DNA of 64,000 nucleotides from positions 496,001 through 560,000 of the forward strand of contig NW_027271276.1 in the NCBI RefSeq assembly GCF_040938485.1. The letters are read 5' to 3'. Source of the stretch: Diadema antillarum. Lineage: Eukaryota. Both the position numbers and the translations under genes were made by a program. The notes under the pieces are model-generated. The model did not search any database. It saw nothing but the letters and a program-made list of their open reading frames with translations, and was not told the DNA's origin. Shown one piece after another: positions 24,507-35,201 of this stretch (positions are counted from its first letter, which is position 1; the number at the start of each line of letters is the position of its first letter).

Positions 24507-25943
24507 ATGGGAGCAAAGGAGAGCATTCAACAAGGTACACGATGCAGGGTTCATAATTTGGAGAAGGAGCTGTTCTGTGAAGAGTGCAGAGTCTACATCT
24601 GTTCGGACTGTGTTCCATCAACTCATTCTGATCACGAGAAGATACAACGCAGGCAGTTTGAAGATGATCTGGAGCAGAAAGTGCGTATCCTTGATTTTCG
24701 AAGCAAGGACATGAAGGCATATCTCAACAGAAATGTAGAAGTCGCAGAAGAAAAGCGCCAAGAGATAAACTCTGCCATGGAGCATCTAAAAACAGAGGTC
24801 AGAGAAGCCTGCAGTGTACGAGAGCTGAAAGACTTAGAATGTTCCCTGATATATGAGATCGAGAGTCTCCACAGACATTACAATGAGGAGCTTGATACAC
24901 TAAAACATCAAAACCAGCAAAAAATGAGCAAACTGAACAGCATGATGAAACAAGTGGCTACTGACAAGTTGAAATATTTAGAGACAGAGAGCTTGACAGC
25001 TCATGAGTCATTGTGCAGTGAACTCGGTAATATTGTGAAGGAAGAAGTCGATGATGCGGCGCTGGTGGCAGTCAAAGAGAGAGCCTTTCGCAAACAAATC
25101 ACTCCGGCAGGCCAAGATGTCTTTTCTGTTGTGGATGTTCCCATCTTACCGTACCACATCACCAAGAGTGTTTCATTGCGGTCCACGTCTAGTGGCATGG
25201 CTAGTCTCCCGGGGGGCAGTGTTGCGCTGGGATACAGAAGACGCAGCAGAGAAGGAATCGACTTGATAGACTCTACAGGTTGCACACAACCTCTGCAATA
25301 CATTCCTTCAAAGTGTTACCCTGATGTTGCCTTCCTCTCCAATGAGACATTAGTTGCGCCAAGCCTCAATGCCACGGACATCTGTGCCTTCAGCCCCAAT
25401 GGTTTTGAGCTATTCAAGAGCACTCTCCCCACCAAATATTCTTGCCCAAATGTCAGCGTAACTTCTTCAGATGAAATTCTTGTTGCCAATACCACCCAGC
25501 ATATCTACATCTTTGAATCTACGAGTGGAACACTGGAGCTATCGATCTCGACGGAAGATTTCAGGGCTGAAGCGGCACGCTCAACAAGGGCTGGGCCGAT
25601 TGTGTCAACTGCGTCATACCCAGGCATCGTAACGGCCTTTGACAGAGATGGTCAAAGAGGGAACAGCGTTCTGGGGAGCCTTGGGGAACACTTCTTTGTT
25701 GATGTGGATGAGGAGGACAGGATTTACATTCTCACTGTTAGGTGGATTCCCCGTAAAGCTGAGTGCAGTTACAAGCTCTCTTGCTACCGGCTTGACGGGC
25801 TAAATCTGAAAGAAACTGCACAATTTGCAGGAGAAAAGCTGACCTTAAAGAGCAGCTTCTGTTATCTAGTTTGTCTCCAAGACAATATGTTAGCTTTAGT
25901 GAGTGCTTGCACTCTCTACTTTATCCAAGTTCCACCAGTTTGA
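24507..25943 (+). CDS. Intronless B-box / coiled-coil / NHL-like beta-propeller protein (RING-less TRIM-like), 478 aa
   Basis: Long open frame. B-box type-2 pattern CRVH...LFCEECRVYICSDC...HSDH (24543-24635), then a heptad-rich helical segment and a C-terminal beta-strand repeat region (IDLID, EILVA, YIFE, IYILT). The first in-frame ATG is at 24507; the ORF track opens at a GTG at 24459. Confidence 0.85.
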   Translation: MGAKESIQQGTRCRVHNLEKELFCEECRVYICSDCVPSTHSDHEKIQRRQFEDDLEQKVRILDFRSKDMKAYLNRNVEVAEEKRQEINSAMEHLKTEVREACSVRELKDLECSLIYEIESLHRHYNEELDTLKHQNQQKMSKLNSMMKQVATDKLKYLETESLTAHESLCSELGNIVKEEVDDAALVAVKERAFRKQITPAGQDVFSVVDVPILPYHITKSVSLRSTSSGMASLPGGSVALGYRRRSREGIDLIDSTGCTQPLQYIPSKCYPDVAFLSNETLVAPSLNATDICAFSPNGFELFKSTLPTKYSCPNVSVTSSDEILVANTTQHIYIFESTSGTLELSISTEDFRAEAARSTRAGPIVSTASYPGIVTAFDRDGQRGNSVLGSLGEHFFVDVDEEDRIYILTVRWIPRKAECSYKLSCYRLDGLNLKETAQFAGEKLTLKSSFCYLVCLQDNMLALVSACTLYFIQVPPV

Positions 25944-26275
25944 ATGCATAGCAACAGTGAACAGACACCTATTTTAAAATAGGGGATTGCAATGTATGCT
26001 TATTATGTACAGGGTGCTCTGAGCACAGCTATAGTAAAATTTTGTTCCAACAAAGTAAAAATTCAGGTCCCAATCTCTTTTCTTTCTTATCTCTTTCCAC
26101 TCAGCTATGTAGTGAAATTTTTGATACAATGAAAGAAAAATGTAAATCATGAAGACTTTGTTATAATGGAAGACACCTGTATGATTAGTGTTTAAGTGTA
26201 GACTTTTTCTTCCAAATGCTGAGTGACTGGTTTGACTACAGCTCATCAAGCCATGCAGGAGACAGGGTTCTTGTA

Positions 26276-26461
26276 CAGTGGACTCCCGTTATAACGAAGT
26301 CCATGGGACCGGCAGTTTTCTTTCGTAATAACGAAATTTCGTTATAAGCGAATGAATAAACAATAAAAATACATAGAGTTGATAATGTTGCGGCCCTAAA
26401 TTTTATTTCGTTGTAACCGGAATTTCGTTATAACCGTGTTCGTTATAACGGGAGTGCACTG
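26276..26461. mobile_element. pogo/Tigger-type MITE with TA TSD
   Basis: TA|CAGTGGACTCCCGTTATAACGAA ... TTCGTTATAACGGGAGTGCACTG|TA; second copy at 59726-59922. Confidence 0.85.
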
Positions 26462-32699: not shown

Positions 32700-33350
32700 A
32701 TGTACTAGTAGTCTTCAAGTATTGTGACCTTGCATAAATGGGGTGTGTGAGTGTGCCCACGTACATATCCGCCTGTTAGTGCTTGTCATGACGGAAAGTG
32801 AAAACAAGTCCAGAATCTAGACTACTCTCTTCTGTGAGCGTGTGAGCACAGAACTCTTACAAGAGTTCTGTGCGTGTGAGGGGAAACCCGGAACCGTATG
32901 CATTACGTGACCGAGATCGTAGTGTAAACATCAACAGCCCAGCCTGCATAGTAGATCTGCAGCCCAACTAACCCCGTCGCGGGGCGCTGTAACACAGTAG
33001 TTGTCCGTATGGGGTCGCTGCTGCGGTTACAGCCCAACCAACCCAACCGTACATGGTATCTGGTCATTCTTGCCAACCCGCTTTCTTCACATCATCTGAA
33101 ACCAACTTCCACTTTCCCTTATGTGCAAGACACTTGACATGTAACTTTTGCGGGGAAAAAGACTTAAAGTGAAATGACGTATGACAGCTCCAAACGAAAC
33201 AAAATAGGCTGTGACATCACTCCCATAAACGAAGTCGAAGAGCTACTGAGCTGAGTGAATGTCCTGAGCTGAACAGAGCAGTGCAGTGCGTGCGGCCTGG
33301 CACCGACACTCGGTCGCCCACGCCACTCCTTGGTATGTAAATCTTGTTGC
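32700..33350 (+). promoter_or_regulatory. Putative promoter / 5' UTR exon of propeller gene 2
   Basis: CpG-rich; IRF-like GGAAAGTGAAAAC (32793-32805) and AAAGTGAAA (33166-33174); kappaB-like GGGGAAACCC (32880-32889); candidate donor CTTG|GTATGT near 33332 and acceptor ttttattttgcag at 33660. Confidence 0.4.
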
Positions 33351-33824
33351 TACATGCAATTCATTGTCAGCGTCAGAACTTGTTTGTTTGTCTGTTGAAG
33401 TACCTGGTGATATGTTCCACAGTTCCCATGTCTGTCTAGTTAAAGTTCTTAAAATATTTGACGCTGGAAGGAAGTACAAAAAAGAATGCAAATGCACATG
33501 CAACACACCTCCCACGATGGCCCGGCATATGGGGTCCTACATATGATTTGATGTATCAAAATTGATTTCATGATTTGGCAGATTTTAGGAACAAATTGCC
33601 CATTTTTTTTTAAGGAGGCCCTATTTGTAATGACTCTGGCATTGTATTTTTATTTTGCAGGCACAGGGTGCAGATGATCAGCGATATGCATGCTTTGTCG
33701 TGAATGGCTTTGGTGTTTAGTGGTGCATGCACACTGGAGTATTCTCTAGCCCACTAATTTGAGAAACATCGCATAGAATTGACACATTTGTGCCTCATGC
33801 AGAGAAACCAGCTCTAGAGAAAAA

Positions 33825-35201
33825 ATGGATTCTAAGACCAGTGCTGAGGAGACAGAGCAGTGTTGTTCTGTTCCCACGAGCCATGTCGAGCATGAGACAA
33901 CTGATCGCATGGCCTATGAAGAGGAGCTAGAGGGCAAGGTGTATGCCCTGGTCGAGGAAAGTAAGTACAAGGTGCTATGTGTTGACAGCAATATCCAAAT
34001 TGTGGAAAAGAAGCGGCAAGAAATTGCCTTGGCCATGGAGAAACTGAAAGCAGATGTTAGACAAGCCTGTGGTCCTCGGCAGCTCAGAGATCTGGAATGT
34101 GCATTGTTGTATGACATCGAGACCCTACATTCAGGATACAATAGGGAGCTCGATAGACTTAAGCAACGAGATCAGCAAAAGATAAAGAAAATCAACAGAT
34201 TATTGAAAGATGTGGATACAGATGAGTTAAAAAGTTTACAGGGAGAGAACTTGGCTGCTCACGAGTCGCTGTGCTCTGAGCTCGACAAGCTTCTGGAGGA
34301 AGAAATCGATGATGGTCCAGCAGCGGAAGTTAAGGAGAGGGCTTGTCGCAAGCAAGTCGCTCCTGTCGGTCAAAATGTCTTTGCGCTGGTCAACATTCCC
34401 ATCTTTGCATTTCATGTCTTGAAGGAAGTTTCACTGAGAGGAGATTCCTCGGCAATGACAGCACTGTCAGAAGATAGTGTAGCACTTGGATACATGAGCA
34501 TGAACACCGAGGGAATAGATTTGATTGATTCCAGTGGTAGCATTCTTCCTTTGCAGTATATACCTCAACAGTGCTACCCAGATATTTCTTTCCTGTCAAA
34601 TGGAACAGCGCTGTTGTCGTGCTCAAATCTCACCGACATCCGCGCCTATAGTCCTAATGGATTCGAAGTGTTCACCATCACGTGCCCCACCAAGAATAAC
34701 TGCCTAAAGTTTGGCATAACTTCTTCAGATGAAATCCTCGTGGCAAATGGAACGGAGCAAGTCTACGTCTATGAACCGACATCTGGGAAACTAGCACAAA
34801 CCGTGGCAACAACAGAAAGGAGACCAGAGCTGGCGTTTCCAACCAAGTCCGGAGTGATTGTCACAGCTTCCTACTGGCCGAGTATAGTGACCGTCTTTGA
34901 CTGTGATGGTCAGAGGGGGAACAGCATTTCAGGGAGTCTTGGTGAAGAGCTGTTTATCGCTGTGGATGAGGACGACAGGATTTACATCCTCACAATCCTT
35001 TGGATTCCTCGAATAGCTGAATGCAGATACAAACTCTCTCGTTACCGACTGGATGGACTGGATCTGAAGGAAACTGCACAGTTTGCCGGAGAAGGACTTT
35101 CGCTTAAAAGTAGCTTTTGTTACCTGACCTGTCTTTCTCGTGAAAGACTGGCACTAGCATGTGGGCAGGCACTTTACTTCATCCAAATCCCTCCACCGTA
35201 A
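33825..35201 (+). CDS. Intronless paralogue of 24507-25943: coiled-coil / beta-propeller protein with an internally deleted B-box, 458 aa
   Basis: Open 1377-nt frame, colinear with gene 1 without gaps apart from 20 missing codons in the B-box; shared motifs AHESLCSEL, EGIDLID, TSSDEILVAN, DGQRGNS, LKETAQFAGE, LKSSFCYL. Confidence 0.85.
   Translation: MDSKTSAEETEQCCSVPTSHVEHETTDRMAYEEELEGKVYALVEESKYKVLCVDSNIQIVEKKRQEIALAMEKLKADVRQACGPRQLRDLECALLYDIETLHSGYNRELDRLKQRDQQKIKKINRLLKDVDTDELKSLQGENLAAHESLCSELDKLLEEEIDDGPAAEVKERACRKQVAPVGQNVFALVNIPIFAFHVLKEVSLRGDSSAMTALSEDSVALGYMSMNTEGIDLIDSSGSILPLQYIPQQCYPDISFLSNGTALLSCSNLTDIRAYSPNGFEVFTITCPTKNNCLKFGITSSDEILVANGTEQVYVYEPTSGKLAQTVATTERRPELAFPTKSGVIVTASYWPSIVTVFDCDGQRGNSISGSLGEELFIAVDEDDRIYILTILWIPRIAECRYKLSRYRLDGLDLKETAQFAGEGLSLKSSFCYLTCLSRERLALACGQALYFIQIPPP

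Follow-up and report, generated by a model that had tools for sequence, protein, structure and literature searches.

A tandem pair of RING-less TRIM-like genes in the sea urchin Diadema antillarum, one with an apparently recent deletion in its B-box

Brat, like its relatives among the class VII TRIM-NHL proteins (TRIM71/Lin41, TRIM2, TRIM3, TRIM32, Thin), ends in an NHL propeller; ahead of this it has a B-box and a coiled coil, but no RING. The vertebrate RING-less TRIM-like proteins (TRIM16, TRIM29, TRIM14, TRIM44 and TRIM66) also combine a B-box with a coiled coil, followed by other C-terminal domains (SPRY etc.). TRIM16 is reported to form homodimers through its coiled coil and heterodimers with other TRIM proteins (PMC3357404), and the TRIM-NHL paralogues TRIM2 and TRIM3 are known to associate, their B-box not being the driver of higher-order association (PMC9732051). 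In Strongylocentrotus purpuratus the TRIM family amounts to 140 annotated genes, many of them induced in coelomocytes (PMC13043383). Here we describe two neighbouring RING-less genes of this kind, gene 1 and gene 2, from Diadema antillarum. They lie in a stretch of 64,000 nucleotides (RefSeq assembly GCF_040938485.1, contig NW_027271276.1, here C388, positions 496,001 to 560,000, forward strand), referred to as the window, and unprefixed coordinates below are window positions. Taken as a whole, the evidence is best explained by an old tandem duplicate within a RING-less branch of the urchin TRIM proteins, in which the B-box deletion of gene 2 is recent, tolerated and a product of ordinary family turnover; we consider this explanation likely.

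The coding sequence of gene 1 runs from its ATG at 24507 to the end of the stop codon at 25943 (plus strand, 478 residues and a stop) and that of gene 2 occupies 33825-35201 (plus strand, 458 residues and a stop). Both open reading frames (ORFs) were recovered at these positions by an ORF scan, and they are by far the longest of the window, which contains only five ORFs of at least 150 residues. BLASTP aligns the two proteins over 442 residues with 57% identity, 73% positives and not a single gap, and the DNA similarity between the genes stops near the ORF boundaries on both sides. Both start codons stand in strong Kozak context, and both frames are uninterrupted from the methionine to the stop and colinear with full-length paralogous ORFs. 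The first-pass annotation, made from the sequence alone, had described a tandem, same-strand pair of single, colinear and open ORFs, and this description is borne out by the ORF scan and the alignment. The word intronless refers to the coding region; 5' non-coding exons are possible.

The proposed architecture, a RING-less B-box, coiled coil and NHL-like propeller, is confirmed by Pfam, AlphaFold2 and Foldseek, with a predicted local distance difference test (pLDDT) score of 92.3 for the model of protein 1 and 90.8 for that of protein 2. Gene 1 opens with a B-box2 zinc finger (residues 9-45; 24531-24641, plus strand) that matches PF00643 above the gathering score (E=4e-7; 30.5 bits, cut-off 24.1 bits) and, by phmmer, the B-box2 structures of TRIM28 and TRIM21. 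All eight zinc ligands can be read from its sequence (C13, H16, C24, C27, C32, C35, H40, H43), and AlphaFold2 models this part as a small zinc-finger fold. The same Pfam search gives no B-box match, and no other match, in gene 2. The coiled coil of gene 1 (residues 48-196; 24648-25094, plus strand) is modelled as two long and two shorter helices folding back (residues 48-101, 105-152, 160-178 and 184-194 by DSSP), and residues 9-142 are aligned by phmmer to the B-box2 and coiled coil of TRIM28 (6qu1). In gene 2 the coiled coil spans residues 28-175 (33906-34349, plus strand), with helices at 28-81, 85-131, 141-158 and 164-174 by DSSP on the model. As to an antiparallel-dimer geometry, the models are of single chains and contain the long helices at high pLDDT in both proteins.

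The C-terminal parts are modelled as NHL-type beta-propellers: residues 197-478 of gene 1 (25095-25940, plus strand; six blades, modelled over residues 197-474; isoelectric point 5.2) and residues 176-458 of gene 2 (34350-35198, plus strand; isoelectric point 4.7), the latter delimited on the model and set apart by its conservation in the regional comparison given below. Against the PDB, Foldseek ranks the NHL domains of Brat, TRIM71, Lin41, Thin and TRIM2 at the top for the gene 1 propeller, with target-normalised template modelling (TM) scores of 0.67-0.76; the best are those of Brat (1q7f, 4zlr and 5ex7; 0.74-0.76), followed by TRIM71, Thin and TRIM2, whereas WD40 proteins score only about 0.55. 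The six-bladed C-terminal NHL propeller of class VII is thus present by fold. The Pfam NHL repeat (PF01436) has no match in either propeller at E<=10, and in a full-length D. antillarum relative its match is only sub-threshold (E=0.085). Because this repeat goes undetected, the label NHL-like is used here in the sense of the fold.

No RING was found by Pfam in either protein, and a tblastn search of the 64-kb window with five full-length paralogues gave no remnant of a RING or B-box1 at E<=10. At this locus, therefore, the RING is genuinely missing from both genes. By the strict TRIM/RBCC (RING, B-box, coiled coil) definition both proteins are without the RING, while the B-box is present in gene 1 and missing from gene 2. 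Neither predicted protein can be a RING E3 ligase.

The comparison with the described RING-less proteins gives likeness of build without close kinship. Gene 1 has the architecture of Brat, and the propellers resemble those of class VII (TM 0.67-0.76, root-mean-square deviation 3.3-5.2 Å), but sequence identity is 12-16%, no Pfam NHL repeat is detected, a filamin domain is missing, and the tree described below places the origin of the pair within an urchin-specific expansion, so that the pair is not orthologous to class VII. Brat and TRIM71 bind RNA with NHL surfaces that are basic, whereas the propellers of the pair are acidic; judged from their isoelectric points of 5.2 and 4.7, their ligand is probably protein rather than RNA. 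With the vertebrate RING-less TRIM-like proteins gene 1 has in common the B-box and coiled coil without a RING; those proteins are of independent origin and show no specific sequence kinship to the pair.

The nearest relatives are found instead among the sea urchins. The closest database proteins, from S. purpuratus and Lytechinus pictus, are about 630 residues long and have the same C-terminal domain, preceded by a RING, two B-boxes and a coiled coil (32-35% identity, 97% query coverage, E 1e-73 to 1e-49), and no closer relative occurs among the 101 matches in a scan of 1.84 billion representative proteins. The D. antillarum assembly (1.75 Gb, 2963 contigs) holds at least 90 paralogous single ORFs, mostly of 610-680 residues with a RING and two B-boxes. 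In a maximum-likelihood tree genes 1 and 2 are sisters (SH-aLRT, a Shimodaira-Hasegawa-like approximate likelihood ratio test, 100) on a long stem of 0.74 substitutions per site. The pair is sister (SH-aLRT 93) to full-length D. antillarum paralogues on contigs C70 and C400, all of them inside a clade (SH-aLRT 99) with S. purpuratus 'TRIM45/71-like' proteins. This placement implies a single loss of RING and B-box1 that preceded the duplication. Homology, position in the clade and the single coding exon all place the pair in the sea-urchin expansion of intronless RBCC-propeller genes. To this expansion belong D. antillarum XP_071496540.1 and S. purpuratus proteins named 'TRIM45-like', 'TRIM71-like', 'TRIM33-like' or 'Midline-1-like', and the pair is homologous to its members from B-box2 to the C-terminus at 32-35% identity. 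Coiled coil, propeller and single-ORF gene structure are common to both; the pair differs in that some 150 residues at the N-terminus, with the RING and B-box1, are missing, and in gene 2 the B-box2 is gone as well. On these sequence comparisons we assign the pair to a known, very large sea-urchin TRIM family, as a branch devoid of RING and B-box1.

Other reduced members are present in the same subfamily. Truncated or stop-containing copies adjoin full-length sister genes at C400:1355798-1356985, C70:3121614-3122973 and C109:350695-352059; that on C400 is a 422-residue ORF beginning inside the coiled coil, and those on C70 and C109 have in-frame stops. N-terminal truncation and decay seem to recur in this family. 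RING-less B-box/coiled-coil/propeller relatives are also found elsewhere, namely S. purpuratus XP_011663387.2 (534 residues), which is encoded by many Logan contigs of 1.6-2.5 kb, and a 487-residue protein in ENA assemblies. These relatives stand on another branch of the tree, which suggests independent losses of the RING.

The first-pass annotation recognised no orthologue, but both genes do have one in Diadema setosum; outside Diadema none was found in the databases searched. The D. setosum RefSeq model XP_072173099.1 (976 residues), a member of the 90% identity cluster of gene 1, contains the two orthologues fused and in the same order. Gene 1 aligns without gaps to residues 1-477 of this model at 93% identity, and gene 2 to residues 497-976 at 87% identity, the only gap being one of 22 residues. 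Both orthologues start at the same methionine as their D. antillarum counterparts, and in D. setosum both members have an intact B-box and no RING. The first 16 residues of the gene 2 orthologue agree with those of gene 2 save for three substitutions, and its B-box is complete (Pfam E=5e-11, best stretch residues 506-544).

The fused model raises the question of whether the two ORFs are exons of one read-through transcript, translated into a single protein in which coiled coil and propeller occur twice in tandem. XP_072173099.1 joins the orthologues through a linker of 19 residues (478-496), which is translated from the region directly upstream of the gene 2 start and corresponds to 33768-33824 of the window; it may be either an annotation merge or a real read-through transcript. 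The matching frame of D. antillarum, however, has three stop codons upstream of the gene 2 ATG, NCBI lists the D. antillarum products as separate entries of 478 and 458 residues, and the fused model itself is automatic. Automatic annotation pipelines often merge tandem paralogues, and we regard a single gene as very improbable indeed.

Aligned with its D. setosum orthologue, gene 2 shows an in-frame deletion of 66 bp (22 codons; 20 when measured against gene 1) whose junction lies between V16 and P17 (33872-33873, plus strand). Lost with it are five of the eight B-box2 zinc ligands (H16, C24, C27, C32 and C35 in gene 1 numbering), which leaves at most four candidate ligands (C13, C14, H20, H23), and residues 1-27 are disordered in the AlphaFold2 model (pLDDT about 45). 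The early view that the B-box of gene 2 had been disabled by a clean in-frame deletion is thereby upheld: as the B-box of the orthologue is intact, D. antillarum has undergone a true in-frame deletion, and a lineage-specific one. Gene 1 has valine GTT codons at both positions corresponding to the breakpoints, which suggests that the deletion arose via microhomology. A model without a deletion, in which half of the B-box decayed in place (ATG changed to ATC, in-frame TAG and TGA, a new downstream start), was also considered. In global alignment it scored z=2.3 (p~0.02) against z=0.7 for the deletion model, and local alignment was not significant; it was rejected, since the D. setosum orthologue conserves the start codon and the first 16 residues and the 22 codons are cleanly gone.

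The identical junction is present on the second haplotype of the assembly (contig C895, described below) and altogether on three contigs, and the deletion therefore cannot be put down to an assembly error or to a single chromosome. According to the first-pass annotation, the pairing of an intact with a disabled B-box would lose its meaning if homologous pairs all had intact B-boxes and the deletion were a private allele or an assembly error. The former is the case in D. setosum; the latter is contradicted by the three contigs and both haplotypes. By this comparison the deletion is a derived state restricted to the D. antillarum lineage, and the asymmetry of the pair is recent there rather than a conserved design. 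Being young and missing from D. setosum, this asymmetry cannot be what the pair is organised around.

This bears directly on the function first proposed for the pair, a heterodimer acting as sensor and regulator or as receptor and decoy, with gene 2, for want of a B-box, as the partner barred from higher-order assemblies. Several observations agree with such a heterodimer: the coiled coils are colinear at about 50-55% identity and the propellers very similar, the genes are adjacent in two Diadema species, gene 2 is constrained (see below), and TRIM16 (PMC3357404) as well as TRIM2/TRIM3 (PMC9732051) associate with other TRIM proteins. As a built-in feature, however, the arrangement fails on the D. 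setosum pair, whose B-boxes are both intact; the asymmetry has been missing for most of the history of the pair, to judge from a synonymous divergence (dS) of about 1.6 between the genes. Its general premise, that the B-box drives higher-order assembly, fails as well for TRIM2/TRIM3, the closest structural class (PMC9732051). We therefore consider a sensor/regulator or receptor/decoy pair built on the missing B-box improbable, and the deletion is best read as something other than the founding feature of a two-part system.

Contig C895 runs colinear with at least 60 kb of the window; identity is 88-95%, within genes as well as outside them, and the contig is therefore the other haplotype. This agrees with the published account of the D. 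antillarum assembly as retaining both haplotypes (84.4% of BUSCO genes duplicated, consensus quality value (QV) 44.5, heterozygosity 2.52%; PMC13511894). Contig C11 (2285852-2341992) was rejected as a third locus: for at least 55 kb it matches the window at 99.96-100% identity (sampled at 2000-5000, 19004-39003 and 55000-58000, where the haplotype copy on C895 gives 93-95%) and represents an assembly duplicate. With the window contig C388, C11 and C895, the assembly holds three copies of the locus, and gene counts taken from it are therefore inflated.

On C895 both genes carry disabling lesions. The gene 1 allele is interrupted after codon 362 by a terminal-inverted-repeat transposon of about 5.2 kb (insertion site 25592-25593, from the junctions and the empty site), and its ORF ends at 376 residues. 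The element (C895:1347872-1353108) has perfect terminal inverted repeats of 13 bp (CCCTTACAAAAAA), subterminal arrays of TACCATGGTA-type palindromic repeats and no long ORF; its target-site duplication is ambiguous (2-5 bp). The family counts at least 40 genomic copies at 96-99% identity, from which we conclude that the insertion in gene 1 is recent, and the element is a non-autonomous DNA transposon of a family that appears to have been active recently. The gene 2 allele lacks one base in codon 312 (34759, plus strand; allele alignment), which lies outside any homopolymer, and in the assembly its ORF consequently ends by frameshift at 322 residues. Loss-of-function alleles of both genes hence segregate on the other haplotype of the sequenced animal, although purifying selection persists. 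That both null alleles stand on one haplotype would also fit a co-dependence of the two proteins in the proposed pair, but this is one case only, and coincidence alone would produce it with a probability of 50%.

Between the paralogues the ratio of nonsynonymous to synonymous substitution rates (dN/dS) is 0.18-0.21, with a dS of about 1.6 that is saturated, and the propeller is the best conserved part (dN/dS 0.12). Of the differences between the alleles of the two haplotypes, 33 are synonymous and 11 nonsynonymous in gene 2 (dN/dS 0.09-0.17; binomial p~1e-12 against neutrality), and in gene 1 there are 16 of each (dN/dS 0.26-0.36; p~0.001). The nonsynonymous share expected under neutrality is about 76%, and 11/44 and 16/32 were observed for gene 2 and gene 1, respectively. 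These ratios are those of genes under purifying selection. A dN/dS near 1 for gene 2, which would have marked it as a decaying pseudogene, was not found, and on the window haplotype it is not one.

Because of the null alleles, early pseudogenisation is a serious rival to tolerated turnover. In that case the pair, gene 2 first, would be on its way to loss, the B-box deletion would have been slightly deleterious or neutral and have reached a high frequency by drift, and the transposon and the frameshift would be later steps. Besides the lesions of both genes on the second haplotype, such a course would account for a lineage-specific deletion that destroys a conserved domain, and it would be in keeping with the truncated or stop-containing relatives that are common in the family (the 422-residue ORF on C400 and the in-frame stops on C70 and C109). 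It also draws on the surplus of substitutions that both genes show on the D. antillarum side: when amino-acid changes are polarised with the paralogue, gene 2 has 17 derived in D. antillarum against five in D. setosum (p=0.017), and gene 1 has nine against three (p=0.15). An acceleration specific to gene 2 after its deletion was also considered and is not supported, the ratio being about 3:1 in both genes. Against decay stand the fully open ORFs of the window haplotype, the depletion of nonsynonymous polymorphism in both genes and the strong Kozak context of both starts, and on balance we consider it rather unlikely.

Some points nonetheless weigh against tolerated turnover in genes that are still maintained. 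The excess of derived changes in D. antillarum could mean that constraint is starting to relax in both genes. The allelic polymorphisms may partly predate the deletion, because recombination can separate them from it, and purifying selection on gene 2 since the deletion is, on the allelic differences, likely but short of proof. The one-base deletion on C895 could itself be an assembly error, as coverage is about 11x and a QV of 44.5 corresponds to a chance of about 5% of an error somewhere in the ORF.

The deletion may also have been fixed adaptively, with gene 2 turned into a modulator of coiled coil and propeller only, a dominant-negative form or decoy of gene 1 or of RING-bearing relatives. 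We give this a slim chance; if it were true, the locus would be a very young natural conversion of a receptor into a regulator in an invertebrate candidate immune family.

The course of events that we favour, an old duplicate with a tolerated deletion, would then be as follows. A 5'-truncated copy of a member of the sea-urchin-specific family with a single coding exon and RING, B-box1, B-box2, coiled coil and NHL-like propeller would have lost RING and B-box1, been duplicated in tandem and been kept as a pair in the genus Diadema. In D. antillarum the 66-bp in-frame deletion would later have stripped gene 2 of most of its B-box2 and left a disordered head of 27 residues. By analogy with TRIM biochemistry (PMC9732051) the proteins would most likely be non-catalytic dimers held by an antiparallel coiled coil of the TRIM type, with a protein ligand bound by the six-bladed propeller, which is acidic and strongly conserved. 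They might act independently of ubiquitination, like the RING-less Brat, or by competing or pairing with RING-bearing relatives.

The remainder of the window is noted briefly. Upstream of gene 1, an ORF of 181 residues (18393-18938, plus strand) resembles by eye the C-terminal part of a reverse transcriptase of the retrotransposons without long terminal repeats, and probably is a remnant of a long interspersed nuclear element; positions 21448-21620 are a masked run of N. Downstream of gene 2, units of about 330 bp are repeated in tandem (36320-37466); they give staggered matches of 85-89% identity to the C11 duplicate, and the array overlaps an ORF in which the peptide SSVVRR is reiterated. 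At 57670-58000 lies another repeat, about 320 bp long, which dozens of contigs share at 95-98% identity, in many cases as inverted copies side by side, and by this distribution we class it as a very abundant young element.

The pair reveals no new kind of system. It is a dated and clean case of domains being lost step by step within a TRIM family that has expanded in invertebrates: RING and B-box1 went first, B-box2 followed later in one paralogue of one species, and null alleles caused by a transposon and a frameshift are still segregating. As D. setosum retains the intact form, the two congeners constitute a natural experiment on the role of B-box2 in a RING-less coiled-coil/propeller protein. 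D. antillarum being a conservation priority after its mass mortalities, a catalogue of its variable candidate immune genes is also of some practical use.

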